A DNA stretch of 64,000 nucleotides, taken from NCBI GenBank assembly GCA_950097015.1, contig CATNEN010000007.1, forward strand, positions 5,518,001-5,582,000, in the 5' to 3' direction. A model generated the notes under the pieces. The model was not told the origin of the DNA and made no database searches. It was given only the letters and a program-made list of their open reading frames with translations. A program made the position numbers and the translations under genes. This document shows positions 19,461-25,748 of this stretch, one piece after another (positions within the stretch are counted from its first letter, which is position 1; each line of letters begins with the position of its first letter). The stretch comes from Macrostomum hystrix. Taxonomy: Eukaryota; Animalia; Platyhelminthes.

Positions 19461-21084
19461 AATTAATGTAAGACTTAAATGGTGAGTAGAGTCAGATACT
19501 AAGCGGATGACAATTGCATTGCAGGGAGGATGAGAGGGGGTAGGCGGAGTAGAAACTGAGTGAAGATGAGACGGAGTAATAAAGGAGAGGGAGATGGTAG
19601 TGAATGGACAGGGAACAGATGATTTTGATGGCAGTCTCGAAGAGAAAGCACCCGCATGCCTTAGCGTATTTGTCTATCTGTTTGGCAGTCTGGAGTCAAG
19701 AAAATCAACTGTTTCACTGGGCACTCCAGTCCCGCCATGCCATGACAGCGCCCAGGTAGACAGAAGACCAGAGGACGGGAAGGCTGGGAACCCGCGCATC
19801 ATCCTGCAAGCTCCCCCGGCATCTGAGCCACTTTGGCAGCAGGCAGGAAGCCAGCGGGGCCGACAACACACACAAGACAACAACACACTGGCTGAGAGGG
19901 GCTAAATAATTCAATTGCAGGCCCCTAAAACACCGACTCTGCCTGCCTCCTCTGGGCTGGTCCGCAGAAAACAGGTAGATGATAGCCAACAGCATATAGG
20001 ATCTGTACTTTTACTGTCTCCAATGGCAACTGCAGCCAATCATTTTTCATGCTGATTTCAGGCCGCCGTTTCTACTAAAGATCTGAGATAAGTTCCGCGT
20101 GACGCCAGTCAACAATCGCTTCGGTTGCTACTCAACGATCAAAGCAGAGCGGACCGCTGGCTAAAAGTGCAGCTGCTGCTTACACCGATGCCAGACTACA
20201 GTGAGAATGGCCGGCTAGCCGAGGCCATCTGAAGATGACTGCACTGGAGTGGTCAATGGAAAAGTGAGAAGGAGTGACTCAGTTTTAACCAGGTGCCAGT
20301 TCTCAGCAGTTTGAGCAGTTGAGCGACCCTGCTCAGCTAGATGTGAAGAAAAAGGTGCCAGATCACCTTTGCTGGCAGCTGCTCTCCCAGCCGCCGCCGG
20401 ACCCTGGGAATATTGGGAATTAGAAAAACCCCCCACCCGGGTCTGGCAGTTCCGCGATCCGCCGAAACCAAAAAGTGGATTAGCCGGCAGGTAAAGTACT
20501 TTGAATAATTTTTGCACTACCCGGCACACTAGAAGAATTTTTAGAACAACTGGCACAAAGCGAAACCGGTGATAAAAGCATAAATTCGAAAAGTTCATTG
20601 GATTCTCATTAAAATTATAATTCCCGCATTCCGTCTCCGCAATCGATTAATGCGCTGTTCTACTTTATATTTACTGTGATAAACAAATAGATATTTTTAT
20701 AATTGCGATAATCTGGATAATCCATTTGATTACTAGAACGCAGGCAAATTTACACGCATACCACATTGAAAGCAGCGGAGATTCTTATGCGCTTGACAAC
20801 AAACAATGCCACAAAAGTCAATAAATATGTAAAGAGCATATTTTACAAAACAAACAGTTAAACACAGATCAGAAAAAATTGATTCTTATAATTCTGCTGT
20901 AGAAAAATATATTGTTAAAATATTTCGCGATTAGACTGTGGAAATCTACCGCCCTATTATAAGTAGTATAAAGTGAATATATTAATCGAACAGCAAATGT
21001 ACATAGTTCAGCATCTGCGTTGCAGCATATAATTAAATGGAGAGGTGTCAGCACTACTGGTGTTAACAAAACAGCTCAGACAGT

Positions 21085-21302
21085 CTGGGATATTCAGAGA
21101 ATGAGGAACATTCGGACAGTTGGGAATCGGGATATTCAGTCAGTGGAGAACATTTGGACGGTGGGGATATTCAGTCAGTGGGGATGTTCAGTCAGTGGGG
21201 ATGTTCAGTCAGTGGGGATGTTCAGTCAGTGGGGATGTTCAGTCAGTGGGGATATTCAGTCAGTGGGGATGTTCAGTCAGTCGGGATGTTCAGTCAGTGG
21301 GA
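21085..21302 (+). repeat. 17-bp minisatellite (GATGTTCAGTCAGTGGG)
   Basis: Tandem units downstream of the sushi gene stop codon. Confidence 0.9.
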
Positions 21303-21584
21303 CATATCTGTACAATCGATATAAACAGGTGGAGTGACCACAGACGGCCCGGTGGGATATAGCGGATGGTGAGGCGAGAGGAGAGAAAAAAGAGGAGAGA
21401 CGATGGAGAGGGTGGAGAGCAAATATTTGTTTGTGGAACTGCCGTGTCTCTCGAGAGAGAGACAGAGACAGAGACAGAGACAGAGAGAGGCGTGAAGATC
21501 TGAGAAAGAACAAATCAGAAGGCTTAATGAAAACTTGATGAAATCGCACACTGCAGTTTATCAAAAGAGAAAATCCTCATGGGA

Positions 21585-23455
21585 TCACGTAGCTCCGTCA
21601 GGACAGTCAGCCGGCTTGCCCACGGAGCCGCACAATGGCCGATTGCTGGTCAGACTGCGGCTGCTGGCACTCTCCAGTGTCGGCAGGGTGACCGAGGTGC
21701 CATCGCTGAATGCCATCGTCTCTAATGAGCTGCGGTAATTAGATTGCTGTTGTTGTTGCTGCTGCTGCTGATGCGCCGAAGATCCGCCGGCCGCAATTGA
21801 GACAGTCGGCGGAGCGGGCAGGCTGACAGCCGTAGACGTTGACAAAGTGTCGCCGTCGCAGTAACCGGCCGGCAGAGGTCCCGGCGACTGCATCGGACGC
21901 GGCCGACGGCGCGACTGTCGAGTGGCTGCCGAGGAGCTGCGCGATGACAGCGAGGCCTGGTTGGCCGCAGCCGACCTAGACGCTGCTGAGGTCGATGCCG
22001 CGGCCGGCAGCGCAGTCGGGAGTCTCCGACCAGAGGCAGCCGTAGCTGCCGGATTGTCGGCAGCGGATGCCACAGCCTCCTCGTAACTGGGAGGCCTGGC
22101 GGCGGAGAGCAGGCGAACCAGGTCGCCGCCGCCTATGATGCCTCCGCCGACTCCGTCTTCGTCGTTGAAGTCTTCGTAGGCGGCCGACGTGGAGCGAGGA
22201 AAACTGCGACGGCCAGATGCGGACGAGTCCAGCAGCAGGTCGATGGCGCCAAAGTCATCGTAGTAATAGCTACCGCTGCCACCGCCGCCCAGATAGCTGA
22301 AATAGTCGAAGTCATCGAAGCCCGCATCTCGACTGCCCGCTGAGGGAGTCAAGGGCGGCACCGACGGCGGCGACAGGGAGGTGGCCGACGAACCGCCCGC
22401 GGCGGCAACAATGGCAGCCGCGGCAGCGTTACGTCTGGCTCGACGACGGCGAAGAAATCGGGCACGACGAAGGGCGAGCAGGGCGAGGGCGACGGCTAGT
22501 AGCAGGAGGGCCAGGACCGCACAGGGCGCCAGGACCCATGCTAGGGTGGTGAGCAGCGCTGGCGAACCGGACAGACCGACCGAGGAAGAGGACGGGTCGC
22601 AGAGGGTCTCCGGGCCCGGATACCAGGTGCCGTTGTGTTGGCACAGGTGGGCAGTTTCGCGCCCGTCGCAACTAATATAAAGTAAAGGGATTAGGATCCG
22701 ATTTAGATTTAAAAAACCCCACACTGAATGCATCAATTCCCACACTAAATCCATCTAACCCCACACTGAATCCCACACCAAAACAGCTAAGAGACTCACG
22801 AAAACACGGCCAGGGAGCCGGCAAAGTAGAAATCGCACGCCGGGTTAAGGCAGCGCTCAGCGGTGGCCTCAGGAGGTCGGACGCAGCGCACAGAGGGGCG
22901 CACACAGCGTGGCAAACTATCTCGATCCCAGCGTCCGAGACCGGTATCTGACTGTGCGCCAGAGAGACAGGTCCACTGATGCGGCCCCAGCAGCAGGACG
23001 GCGGAGTCGCCAGTTTTCCAACATTCGACAAAGACGCTCTGACCGACGGTGGCGGTGAGGTTGGACCAGACGGGGAGTGGCTCGGCCGCATTGTCGAGGC
23101 TCGGCAGGCCTGGCACTCGGCAGGTGTCGGCCGGCAGGTCGACGGTGGAGGGAGCCGAAGATTCCCAGCATTCGACAGGCGGCCGCCAGCTGCCGTCGGG
23201 CAGGCAGACAGAGTAGCGGCGCTCAGCCAGGCCGAGGCAGCGGTAAGCCAGCAGGCCGCCACGCGCAGCCAGAGTCGATGCCGTCGCGGCCGACGCGGAT
23301 TCGGCTGCCGAGGACGTCAGGGTAAGAAGGCGAGGCGGCTCCGCGAATGCCGAAGCAAACGGACTGGCCGAGATCTGCAGCTGGCAGCCAGACGGCGTTG
23401 ACGTTGCCGCTGCGGCCACCGCCAGCAAGACGGCCAATAGGGACAGCTGGGACCG
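21585..23455 (-). CDS. Type I membrane protein with ~3 sushi/CCP domains and a PPxY motif (SUSD4/SUSD6-like); no genomic ATG
   Basis: Exons 23455-22800 and 22671-21585 (phase 2). Signal-peptide-like RSQLSLLAVLLAVAAAA, three C..C..W..C modules, TM LAWVLAPCAVLALLLLAVALALLAL, Arg-rich stop-transfer and cytoplasmic PPSYEEA. Confidence 0.8.
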
Positions 23456-23509
23456 CTGAAATGGGAAGGGAAGTGTTGATTGTAGGATGAATGATAGGAC
23501 GACACTATT

Positions 23510-23800
23510 GATCTGCTGAAACTACAGATCTGCTGATAATAATGACCTGCTGATAATAATGACCTGCTGATAATAATGATCCGCTGATACTAGTGACTTG
23601 CTGATACTACTGGTTTGCTTATACTACTGATTTGCTTATACTACTGATTTGCTGATACTAGTGACTTGCTGATAATACTGATTTGCTGATACTACTGACT
23701 TGCTGATACTACTGACTTGCTGATACTACTGATTTGCTGATACTAGTGTCTTGCTGATACTACTGACTTGCTGATACTACTGACTTGCTGATACTGATCT
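23510..23800 (+). repeat. 17-bp minisatellite (TGCTGATACTACTGACT)
   Basis: Tandem array between RPS8 and the sushi gene. Confidence 0.92.
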
Positions 23801-23944
23801 GGTGATAAAACTGACAGGATAAACGTGTTAGAATCCTAGACGCTCCTAATTAAAATAGCTCGCAATAATCGTTAATAAGGAATAATGAAAGGAATGACAG
23901 GCTGCAACAACAGTTTTTTTCAATCCAATCCAGCGTTTTAAAAT

Positions 23945-23950
23945 TTTATT
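23945..23950 (-). terminator. Putative polyadenylation signal AATAAA of RPS8
   Basis: AATAAA on the minus strand ~125 nt after the RPS8 stop. Confidence 0.6.
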
Positions 23951-24074
23951 TTGCTAATCAAGCCCACAACAATTGCTAAAACTGAACAAGCGCACGCGCA
24001 CACAGTTGTTTAACATGAGTAACCTTAGCAAAGTCTGAATCGGTCTCATCCATCAGCAAGGCCGCAGCTAGGCT

Positions 24075-24809
24075 CTACTTGGCCTTCTTGGCGCGGATCT
24101 TCCTCAGGTAGAAGTCCAGCTCCTTGCCCTCCAGGATGTAGCCATCGGCGCGGCCGCACTGGCCCGGCCGGGAGGTGATGCAGGCGTACAGACGACCGCT
24201 GGCGAACTGTTCCAGCAGGGCAGGCGGCACCTCCGCTTTCTTCTGCCGTTCAGCGTACTTCTTCATTGTCTTCTTGCTGCGCGTGAACGACAGAGGAGCG
24301 TCGGCGCCAGTCGCTGGCTTGGCGGCGACTGCGGTGGCATCGCCAGACTCAGCTTTGCCAGCGGCGGCGGCGTCAGCTGGCGCAGCGGCATCGGCGGCTT
24401 TGGCAGCGGGAGCCTTCTTCTCCTTCTTGCGGGCCAGTGGCAGCAGGTAATGCGACTCGAACCACTGACGGAACGGCGTGGCGTCGATCAGCACGATGGC
24501 GTTCTTCACCAGGGTCTTGGTGCGCACCAGCTCATTGTTGCTGGCATTGTAGACGGTGTCAATGATGCGAGTCTTGCGAGCCACTCCCCTAGACGGCCAG
24601 CTGAAGTTGCCAGTGTCCAGGCGGAGGGCGCGCAGCTTTATGCCACCGCCGCGCACACGAACGGAGTGGACGCGCTTCGCCGTGCCAGGCTGAGCGATCT
24701 TGGTCAGGGCTGGCGGGCGGCCCAGCTCGAACTTGCGCTTCTTGCGCAGCTGCTCGCGGCGACCTCCGGTCTTGCGGCGCTTGTGGGTGCGATCGCGGGT
24801 GATGCCCAT
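24075..24809 (-). CDS. RPS8: 40S ribosomal protein S8 (eS8), 244 aa, intronless CDS
   Basis: [16 protein letters not shown]...[48 protein letters not shown] branch/acceptor (ctaat...ccgcag) lies 2 nt before the ATG. Confidence 0.98.
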
Positions 24810-24859
24810 TGCTGCGGATTGGAGATTAGCGGCATAAGACTTTAAATTTATTGGCTTTG

Positions 24860-24978
24860 CTGATCCCAACTGATCTGATATCCCAACTGATCTGATATCC
24901 CAACTGATCAGTTATCCCAACTGATCTGATATCCCAACTGATCAGATATCCCAACTGATCTGATATCCCAACTGATCT
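24860..24978 (+). repeat. 17-bp minisatellite (TCCCAACTGATCTGATA)
   Basis: About 7 units just upstream of the RPS8 acceptor. Confidence 0.9.
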
Positions 24979-25748
24979 GCTTAGCTGTTTTATATCCGAA
25001 AAGTCCAGTAAAAAAACAATAAACAACAGTTTTAAGAAATACATTAGCAAATGTAATTAAATAATCCGCAAAGAAAGCAGTGGCAGAATTTTTTGACAGG
25101 CATTTTGCAAAGAATCGATAGGATCTATACAAGGTGTTCCAAAACGCACTGTTAGAGAGCTTGTCTAACTGGCCAACTGGACGATAGACAAATAGACGAA
25201 TAGATTTTTTATAAACTACAACAATCGACATGCTACTGCCTGGCCAGTAGTATCCGTTGCAAATCGCACAATATATTGAAACGATACAGACGTAATGATA
25301 TTAACTATTTCTTTTGTTAAAAAATACGATATATACTCTAGGTTATGAAAACATGAATGAGTAGCATGAACACGCTTTTTAAGGAACAATAAAGATCTTA
25401 ACTGACAAGCAAGAGACAACAACAGAAACACGAATAAGGTGAAGCGAACACTGGAACAATAAATAAATGCTTAATTACAATTTTTGACCTTTCTACGTAA
25501 ATAGATTATAAAAACTGACCTAGCGACAAAACAAGGGCTTCAACAGCCATTCTACTGCAATGAAACTAGAAGAGGCAGAATATTATTGGAACACCAAAAT
25601 ATCTAAGAAATTATTGCTGCAATTTGCGAAACTCCTGACACGCTTGAAGGCCTAATTTAATCCCATAATTTTATCCCATATCTTGAAAATGATAATTTGA
25701 ATCTGTCGACCATAATGCTAAAATATGACTCTGAAGGTTTATTTTCTA

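Follow-up and report, generated by a model that had tools for sequence, protein, structure and literature searches.

The DNA discussed here is a 64-kb stretch of the genome of the flatworm Macrostomum hystrix (the window, searched on both strands), and the subject of the analysis is a gene of two exons that lies on its minus strand, directly downstream of RPS8, that is single-copy in the genome, and whose long open reading frame (ORF) begins at a splice acceptor without an ATG of its own. Six public RNA runs belonging to two studies were found, four of which (X1 from study P1; X3, X4 and X5 from study P2) were compared, as assembled contigs, with positions 21301-25300, the identity of the contigs to the window being at least 99% in all four. 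In transcriptional order, the features of the gene are the following:

23456-23470, minus strand: trans-splice acceptor with its pyrimidine tract, cccttcccatttcag (from the sequence; the contigs of four runs leave the genome at 23456).
22800-23455, minus strand: coding exon 1, 656 nucleotides (nt) (from its translation, contig coverage, the joint 22671/22800 and a colinear Macrostomum lignano orthologue).
23399-23455, minus strand: codons 2-20, a signal-peptide-like segment, RSQLSLLAVLLAVAAAATS.
22672-22799, minus strand: the sole intron, 128 nt, GT..AG (from the joint in X3, X4 and X5, which is CT..AC on the plus strand).
21585-22671, minus strand: coding exon 2 (from the sequence and the contigs; identity with M. 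lignano 76%).
22470-22544, minus strand: predicted transmembrane segment of 25 residues, LAWVLAPCAVLALLLLAVALALLAL (best 19-residue hydropathy mean 2.88).
21495-21584, minus strand: 3' untranslated region (UTR), reaching at least 21495 (from the contigs).

Read on the minus strand, cccttcccatttcag ends with a g at 23456, the AG of the acceptor being 23457-23456, and CGG TCC CAG CTG TCC CTA TTG starts at 23455, which confirms the acceptor and the phase-0 opening that a first-pass annotation of the sequence had proposed. The TTTCAG of this acceptor matches [T/C]TNCAG, the motif of the spliced leader (SL) acceptors of M. lignano (PMC8629364). Exon 1 holds residues 2-219 and the first two nucleotides of codon 220, with no in-frame ATG, and encodes the start that resembles a signal peptide, two modules rich in Cys and the N-terminal half of the next one. 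It is followed after 22800 by the intron donor GTGAGT, the frame resuming after the TAG acceptor at 22671; the intron contains a 21-bp tandem repeat at 22714-22773. Exon 2 provides the second half of the third, Sushi-like module, the transmembrane helix and a cytoplasmic tail of about 290 residues, and closes with a TGA stop codon at 21587-21585. The exon model was corrected according to the RNA contigs, which place exon 1 at 23455-22800, the intron at 22672-22799 and the beginning of exon 2 at 22671. The extent given for the 3' UTR is only a minimum, because the contigs are cut at a (GAGACA)n microsatellite (21453-21486). Just past this microsatellite, separate RNA contigs cover 21301-21442 at about twice the depth (about 33-40), and they may belong to a longer 3' UTR whose assembly breaks at the repeat, or else to a different transcript. 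In addition, position 23360 (plus strand) is G in all four RNA runs and C in the assembly, a synonymous mismatch (Pro33, CCG to CCC) that is either an assembly or a strain difference.

The evidence on how the mRNA begins comes from the contigs. In all four runs, from both studies, they depart from the genome at 23456 and continue on the plus strand as ATGCAATAAATTGAGTCTTCG(CA); on the mRNA strand, this extension is ...TGCGAAGACTCAATTTATTGCAT, then G (which is 23456) and then CGG TCC CAG, the g at 23456 coinciding with the G of the leader AUG. The mRNA reads, in consequence, ...GC AUG CGG UCC CAG across the junction between the SL and the exon. Among the contigs of the four runs (21301-25300), none joins 23456 to a place further upstream, and the first-pass prediction of an SL ending in ATG, joined at this acceptor with no cis-spliced upstream exon, is therefore borne out in four runs from two studies. 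The contigs of X3, X4 and X5 skip 22672-22799 exactly, and the removal of this 128-nt GT..AG intron identifies them as spliced RNA; furthermore, in X4 and X5 one record of about 1.9 kb spans 21495-23456 with the intron removed and the SL end included. The same SL extension is present at the RPS8 acceptor (24812) in all four runs, which serves as an internal positive control. Once joined, the SL AUG, exon 1 and exon 2 form 581 codons, in frame, up to the TGA.

The leader itself can be traced in the assembly, where a 24-mer ending in ATG, TGCGAAGACTCAATTTATTGCATG, has 29 copies, many of them in arrays on contigs C15, C17 and C42 with a period of roughly 11.6 kb; a search of the whole assembly found no copy within 3 Mb of the window. 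Two loci (L001 and L006) read ...ggtctcttacTGCGAAGACTCAATTTATTGCATG followed by gtaagac (TTGCATG, then gtaagac). Their SL exon, ...gacggtctcttacTGCGAAGACTCAATTTATTGCATG before gtaagac, has its ATG abutting the GTAAG donor, and is identical to the 35-nt SL of M. lignano, including the GTAAG donor (PMC8629364). Other exact copies of the leader, at L002-L005, are dispersed and lack a GT donor. The assumption that the SL of this organism ends in AUG was correct, given an SL gene in which ATG is immediately followed by GTAAG at L001 and L006.

Regarding the start codon, the absence of ATGs reported by the first-pass annotation between the AATAAA hexamer (23950-23945) and the acceptor at 23456 was found to be part of a longer, 557-nt stretch of the minus strand with no ATG, which extends from the ATG at 24016-24014, the nearest one upstream, to the acceptor; that ATG falls in the RPS8 3' UTR. 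The scarcity of Met in the protein was equally confirmed, with in-frame Met only at codons 1 (the SL AUG), 480 and 539 of the 581, the last two far inside the cytoplasmic tail. Downstream on the mRNA, the AUGs that come first (+285, +365 and +432) all lie in other frames, with ORFs of 35-140 codons. How unusual is such a gap? On both strands of the window, 13 of the 1823 gaps between ATGs (0.7%) reach at least 560 nt. Of the 557 nt, 292 are occupied by a 17-bp tandem repeat (23504-23795), and for the other 265 nt, outside the repeat, chance predicts about 4.2 ATGs (Poisson estimate, P about 0.015). The absence of ATGs is real and by itself modestly unusual; being only modestly improbable, it leaves the decision to the RNA junction.

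Placing a Met before the frame gives MRSQLSLLAVLLAVAAAATS, as the first-pass annotation had translated it, with MRSQ as n-region, a 14-residue Leu/Ala/Val core (residues 5-18) and the small-residue c-region TSTPSG. Both the N-terminus and the transmembrane segment were called from Kyte-Doolittle hydropathy (11- and 19-residue means) and topology logic. The 11-residue means rise up to 2.9 over residues 5-17 and are about 0 after residue 16, a profile with which the N-terminus would act as a cleaved signal peptide. The transmembrane segment is directly followed by RRARFLRRRRARR, as expected from the positive-inside rule. In an AlphaFold2 model of the M. lignano orthologue, built from a four-row alignment, this stretch is a helix and the sole part with a predicted local distance difference test score (pLDDT) above 60; the mean pLDDT of 35 provides no usable fold model. 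The ectodomain carries 14 Cys and two sequons for N-glycosylation, NLT and NGT. Both sequons and all Cys but one precede the transmembrane segment, the remaining Cys being inside it, and in its architecture the protein looks like a type I membrane glycoprotein.

The Cys positions of the ectodomain fit an organization in three Cys/Trp modules, each of which would have four Cys, with a Trp located between Cys3 and Cys4. The name "sushi protein" used in the first-pass annotation can be kept in part, due to the match of module 3 with a Sushi profile made from the genome itself, but not as a Pfam assignment. At E<=10, the Pfam Sushi family (PF00084) matches neither the exons nor the modules taken separately nor the orthologue, and among its 57 matches over the whole genome none lies at this locus. 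When the profile was built from six of these 57 segments, hhalign aligned module 3 to it with a probability of 95% (P=3e-8), and modules 1 and 2, in the same register, weakly (P=0.002 and P=0.046, respectively), the tail used as control giving 0.76. The protein-language-model neighbours in the ESM Atlas are Sushi clusters (score 0.86, taken as a lead only), and a sequence search of the PDB with the alignment profile retrieved no relative. In comparison with the Sushi/CCP/SCR domain (PF00084), the modules may be alike in the four-Cys framework and the Trp, at least module 3 being Sushi-like, and are unlike in that they escape the Pfam hidden Markov model (HMM), with modules 1 and 2 weak in the profile comparison as well.

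Homology searches were run exon by exon, exon 1 by exhaustive HMMER against 1.84 billion representatives and exon 2 by a word-indexed search, and the exons were joined only for the ATG count and the frame length. Among the 1.84 billion representatives, exon 1 retrieved a single homologue, from M. lignano, and the search with exon 2 led to the same cluster, according to which the protein is, to date, known from Macrostomum alone. The homologue (PAA56429.1/PAA89560.1, plus PAA79990.1 as a second, 98%-identical member of the cluster) comprises proteins of 580-582 residues, all labelled "partial", that are colinear with both exons from the first residue to the last. Identity is 59% in exon 1 (the ectodomain) and 76% in exon 2 (the tail), the tail being the more conserved of the two, and all Cys positions are kept. 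The conserved blocks of the tail are RPPSY(D/E)EAV (with a PPxY motif), DFDYFSY, YYYDDFGAIDLLLDSS and the last 50 residues or so. The tail thus carries PPSY together with acidic/aromatic motifs, and its conservation hints that partners inside the cell, WW-domain or adaptor proteins for example, are conserved too.

The conservation includes the start. The M. lignano proteins begin with LSQLPLVATLLAW (LSQLPLVATLL), aligned to RSQLSLLAVLLAV (RSQLSLLAVLL) in M. hystrix, and their first Met is near residue 268. This Met-less start aligns to the same codon and is thus conserved between both species. In M. lignano, gene models were delimited at mapped trans-splice sites once the SL had been trimmed off (PMC5730564), and an AUG donated by the SL would be expected to leave a 5'-partial model beginning at precisely this codon.

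Taking all this together, we are highly confident that this is a two-exon, minus-strand gene for a type I membrane protein of 581 residues that has no initiator of its own, and in which the AUG of the SL is the only one able to open the frame. The pre-mRNA would carry an AUG-free outron; the spliceosome would join the SL at the AG of 23457-23456, so that the leader would bring both the cap and the initiator, its 3'-terminal AUG landing in frame before CGG (Arg2); and translation from there would yield a pre-protein whose first 20 residues or so would direct its entry into the endoplasmic reticulum (ER). The junction, the frame, the lack of an alternative AUG and the conservation are direct observations. 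That ribosomes start at the SL AUG is what the schistosome precedent leads us to infer. The first-pass annotation had stated that secretory targeting depends on the leader; the dependence stands, but was understated, as the whole frame has no usable start in the absence of the SL AUG.

Several points weigh against this explanation. The context of the SL AUG is weak, with U at -3 and C at +4. The RPS8 mRNA carries the SL AUG in another frame, 5 nt ahead of its true AUG (SL...GCAUG, then CA AUG GGC; 24807-24814), where it opens an overlapping ORF of 36 codons, and the RPS8 AUG has a stronger context (G at -3 and G at +4). This implies that the SL AUG must often be skipped, and suggests routine leaky scanning past it on a very abundant mRNA. 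With such frequent skipping, the translation of the membrane-protein gene may be inefficient. Furthermore, the contigs are blind to minor isoforms, to true 5' ends and to the share of mRNAs that is trans-spliced, the signal-peptide call draws on hydropathy and topology logic only, and the acceptor position in M. lignano is deduced from where its "partial" proteins start.

The weak context of the SL AUG and its evident skipping on the RPS8 mRNA are also what could favour a start at a near-cognate codon in exon 1, CUG at codon 5 or UUG at codon 8, that would make the SL AUG irrelevant, as in-frame CTG and TTG do occur within the first eight codons. Nevertheless, every mRNA contig seen has an in-frame AUG 12-21 nt upstream of these CUG and UUG, the Met-less start is kept in M. 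lignano right at the splice junction, and initiation at the SL AUG is established in flatworms in what PMC9851317 relates of Cheng 2006, all of which makes a near-cognate start very improbable. A missed cis-spliced upstream exon that supplies the ATG in the main isoform, with the SL form being a minor one, appears even less probable. Exon 1 begins at a normal-looking AG acceptor, and contigs drop rare or alternative forms; however, in each of the four assemblies the end at 23456 is the SL, with no joint to an upstream place, the 557 nt upstream are ATG-free as far as the RPS8 3' UTR, and the M. lignano gene models start at the same codon at three loci.

Finally, could the frame be a pseudogene or a transcribed non-coding stretch, where a missing ATG would be meaningless? 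It belongs to no Pfam family, has no PDB relative and gives a very poor structure model, and its sequence is largely Ala/Ser-rich and of low complexity. Nonetheless, the frame stays open for 581 codons across a spliced intron, is expressed in two studies and is single-copy, its conservation in M. lignano runs from end to end (59%/76%, with all Cys kept) and its module 3 matches the Sushi profile, so that of the alternatives to a leader-donated start this is the one to which we give the least credit.

The pre-mRNA to which the leader is added has to be considered together with the neighbouring gene and the spacer between both:

24075-24812, minus strand: RPS8, a single exon (Pfam Ribosomal_S8e, E=4e-23; SL end at 24812).
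23945-23950, minus strand: AATAAA hexamer, candidate poly(A) signal of RPS8 (from the sequence).
23457-23967, minus strand: spacer/outron, ATG-free (from the sequence and the contigs; 17-bp repeat at 23504-23795).

RPS8 has its acceptor (ccgcag) ending at 24812, its own ATG at 24809 and a TAG stop codon at 24077-24075. An Ala/Pro/Lys-rich, low-complexity insertion at 24280-24420 (minus strand) spreads 171 residues of the protein over only 67 positions of the Pfam S8e profile. The RPS8 contigs stop at 23967, 23968 and 23987 in three runs, with depths above 1000, which is at least 17 nt short of AATAAA, and due to this the hexamer is only a candidate as its poly(A) signal. No RNA contig of the four runs covers 23579-23846. 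Rfam gave only a chance-level match over 21000-25400, on a microsatellite, and none in the spacer. Tandem repeats of 17 bp are present at 23504-23795, 24863-24979 and 21161-21301, that is, in both outrons/spacers and downstream of the gene. The idea of the outron repeat being a special signal was rejected, since there are about 25 minisatellite arrays (13-45 bp) in the 64-kb window, which look like a genome-wide habit and not like a signal.

Is the gene, then, transcribed together with RPS8, as the first-pass annotation considered probable? The two genes share their strand and each receives the SL by trans-splicing, with an intergenic distance of about 510 nt (about 220 nt without the tandem repeat). 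In M. lignano, operons have been defined by distances below 1000 bp, which peak around 100 bp once repeats are subtracted (PMC8629364), and the pair agrees with that definition (same strand, downstream gene SL trans-spliced, less than 1000 bp). On the other hand, the gene could have its own promoter in the spacer of about 510 nt, giving a short outron that is discarded, in which case the SL would still provide the AUG without any operon. This alternative, to which we assign slightly less than an even chance, is favoured by contig depths about 100-fold apart (1168-1741 for RPS8 and 13-17 for the gene, depth being a poor measure of the RNA level), by the stretch without contigs (23579-23846) and by the fact that many trans-spliced Macrostomum genes are monocistronic, about 60% being outside operons (PMC8629364). 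Against it are the shared strand and SL trans-splicing of both genes and the distance of about 510 nt (about 220 nt without the repeat), which fits the published operon definition (PMC8629364). The missing coverage is uninformative, because repeat-rich operon spacers are known to break RNA assemblies (PMC8629364). An origin of the pre-mRNA in RPS8 read-through stands, for these reasons, at nearly even odds.

Start codons donated by the SL are not new in this phylum. The SL RNAs of flatworms share a conserved AUG-GU motif (PMC12582326), and the M. hystrix genome paper considers the final ATG of the SL a likely start codon (PMC10468722). In the passages of PMC9851317 that summarise Cheng et al. 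2006, the SL AUG falls in frame in 28% of those Schistosoma mansoni transcripts that are trans-spliced, and over 40 cDNAs depend on it; the same source terms the flatworm frames initiated in this way "slORFs". The gene described here has in common with them an SL exon that ends in AUG plus a GU donor and is joined in frame to a long, AUG-less ORF. Unlike the Schistosoma examples, it belongs to a free-living Macrostomum, its protein is limited to the genus and its SL Met begins a signal-peptide-like segment; in addition, initiation at the SL AUG would be carried over here from schistosomes to a Macrostomum gene. With M. lignano (PMC5730564, PMC8629364) it shares the 3' sequence of the SL, the [T/C]TNCAG acceptor, trans-spliced same-strand neighbours less than 1000 bp apart and a repeat-rich spacer. 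In contrast with the operons of that species (PMC8629364), no polycistronic precursor was seen among the contigs here, the repeat spacer being a place where contigs break. In those sections of PMC5730564 and PMC8629364 that deal with these features, SL-donated start codons are not analysed.

The mechanism is already known in flatworms, and the knowledge of it is not changed by this gene, which adds one more RNA-validated case. What is new in it is the combination of a membrane protein found only in Macrostomum, a signal-peptide Met supplied by the leader and a Met-less start common to M. lignano. A broader proposal, that for this receptor-like, genus-restricted protein the need for the leader is strict and of old date, maintained since the split of M. 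hystrix and M. lignano, with SL trans-splicing as an on/off switch of translation as well as of ER entry, is one that we regard as rather unlikely at present. Were the gene, in addition, to end a housekeeping operon (MRPL28, cyclin K, RPS8) as its last cistron, the approximately 100-fold lower RNA of the gene and any tissue specificity would be set post-transcriptionally, the possible levers being the use of the acceptor, the weak context of the SL AUG and the stability of the mRNA.

For annotation, the consequence is that genes started by the SL AUG will be labelled "partial" or mis-started unless that AUG is added. The M. lignano orthologues are indeed labelled partial in their deposited records, and in the annotation pipeline of M. 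hystrix the ATG was on purpose not trimmed. For the biology of these worms, the gene offers an RNA-backed case, in a free-living flatworm genus capable of transgenesis, of a whole secretory/membrane protein that needs trans-splicing for its first codon, and it would be a convenient reporter substrate for the efficiency of the SL AUG.

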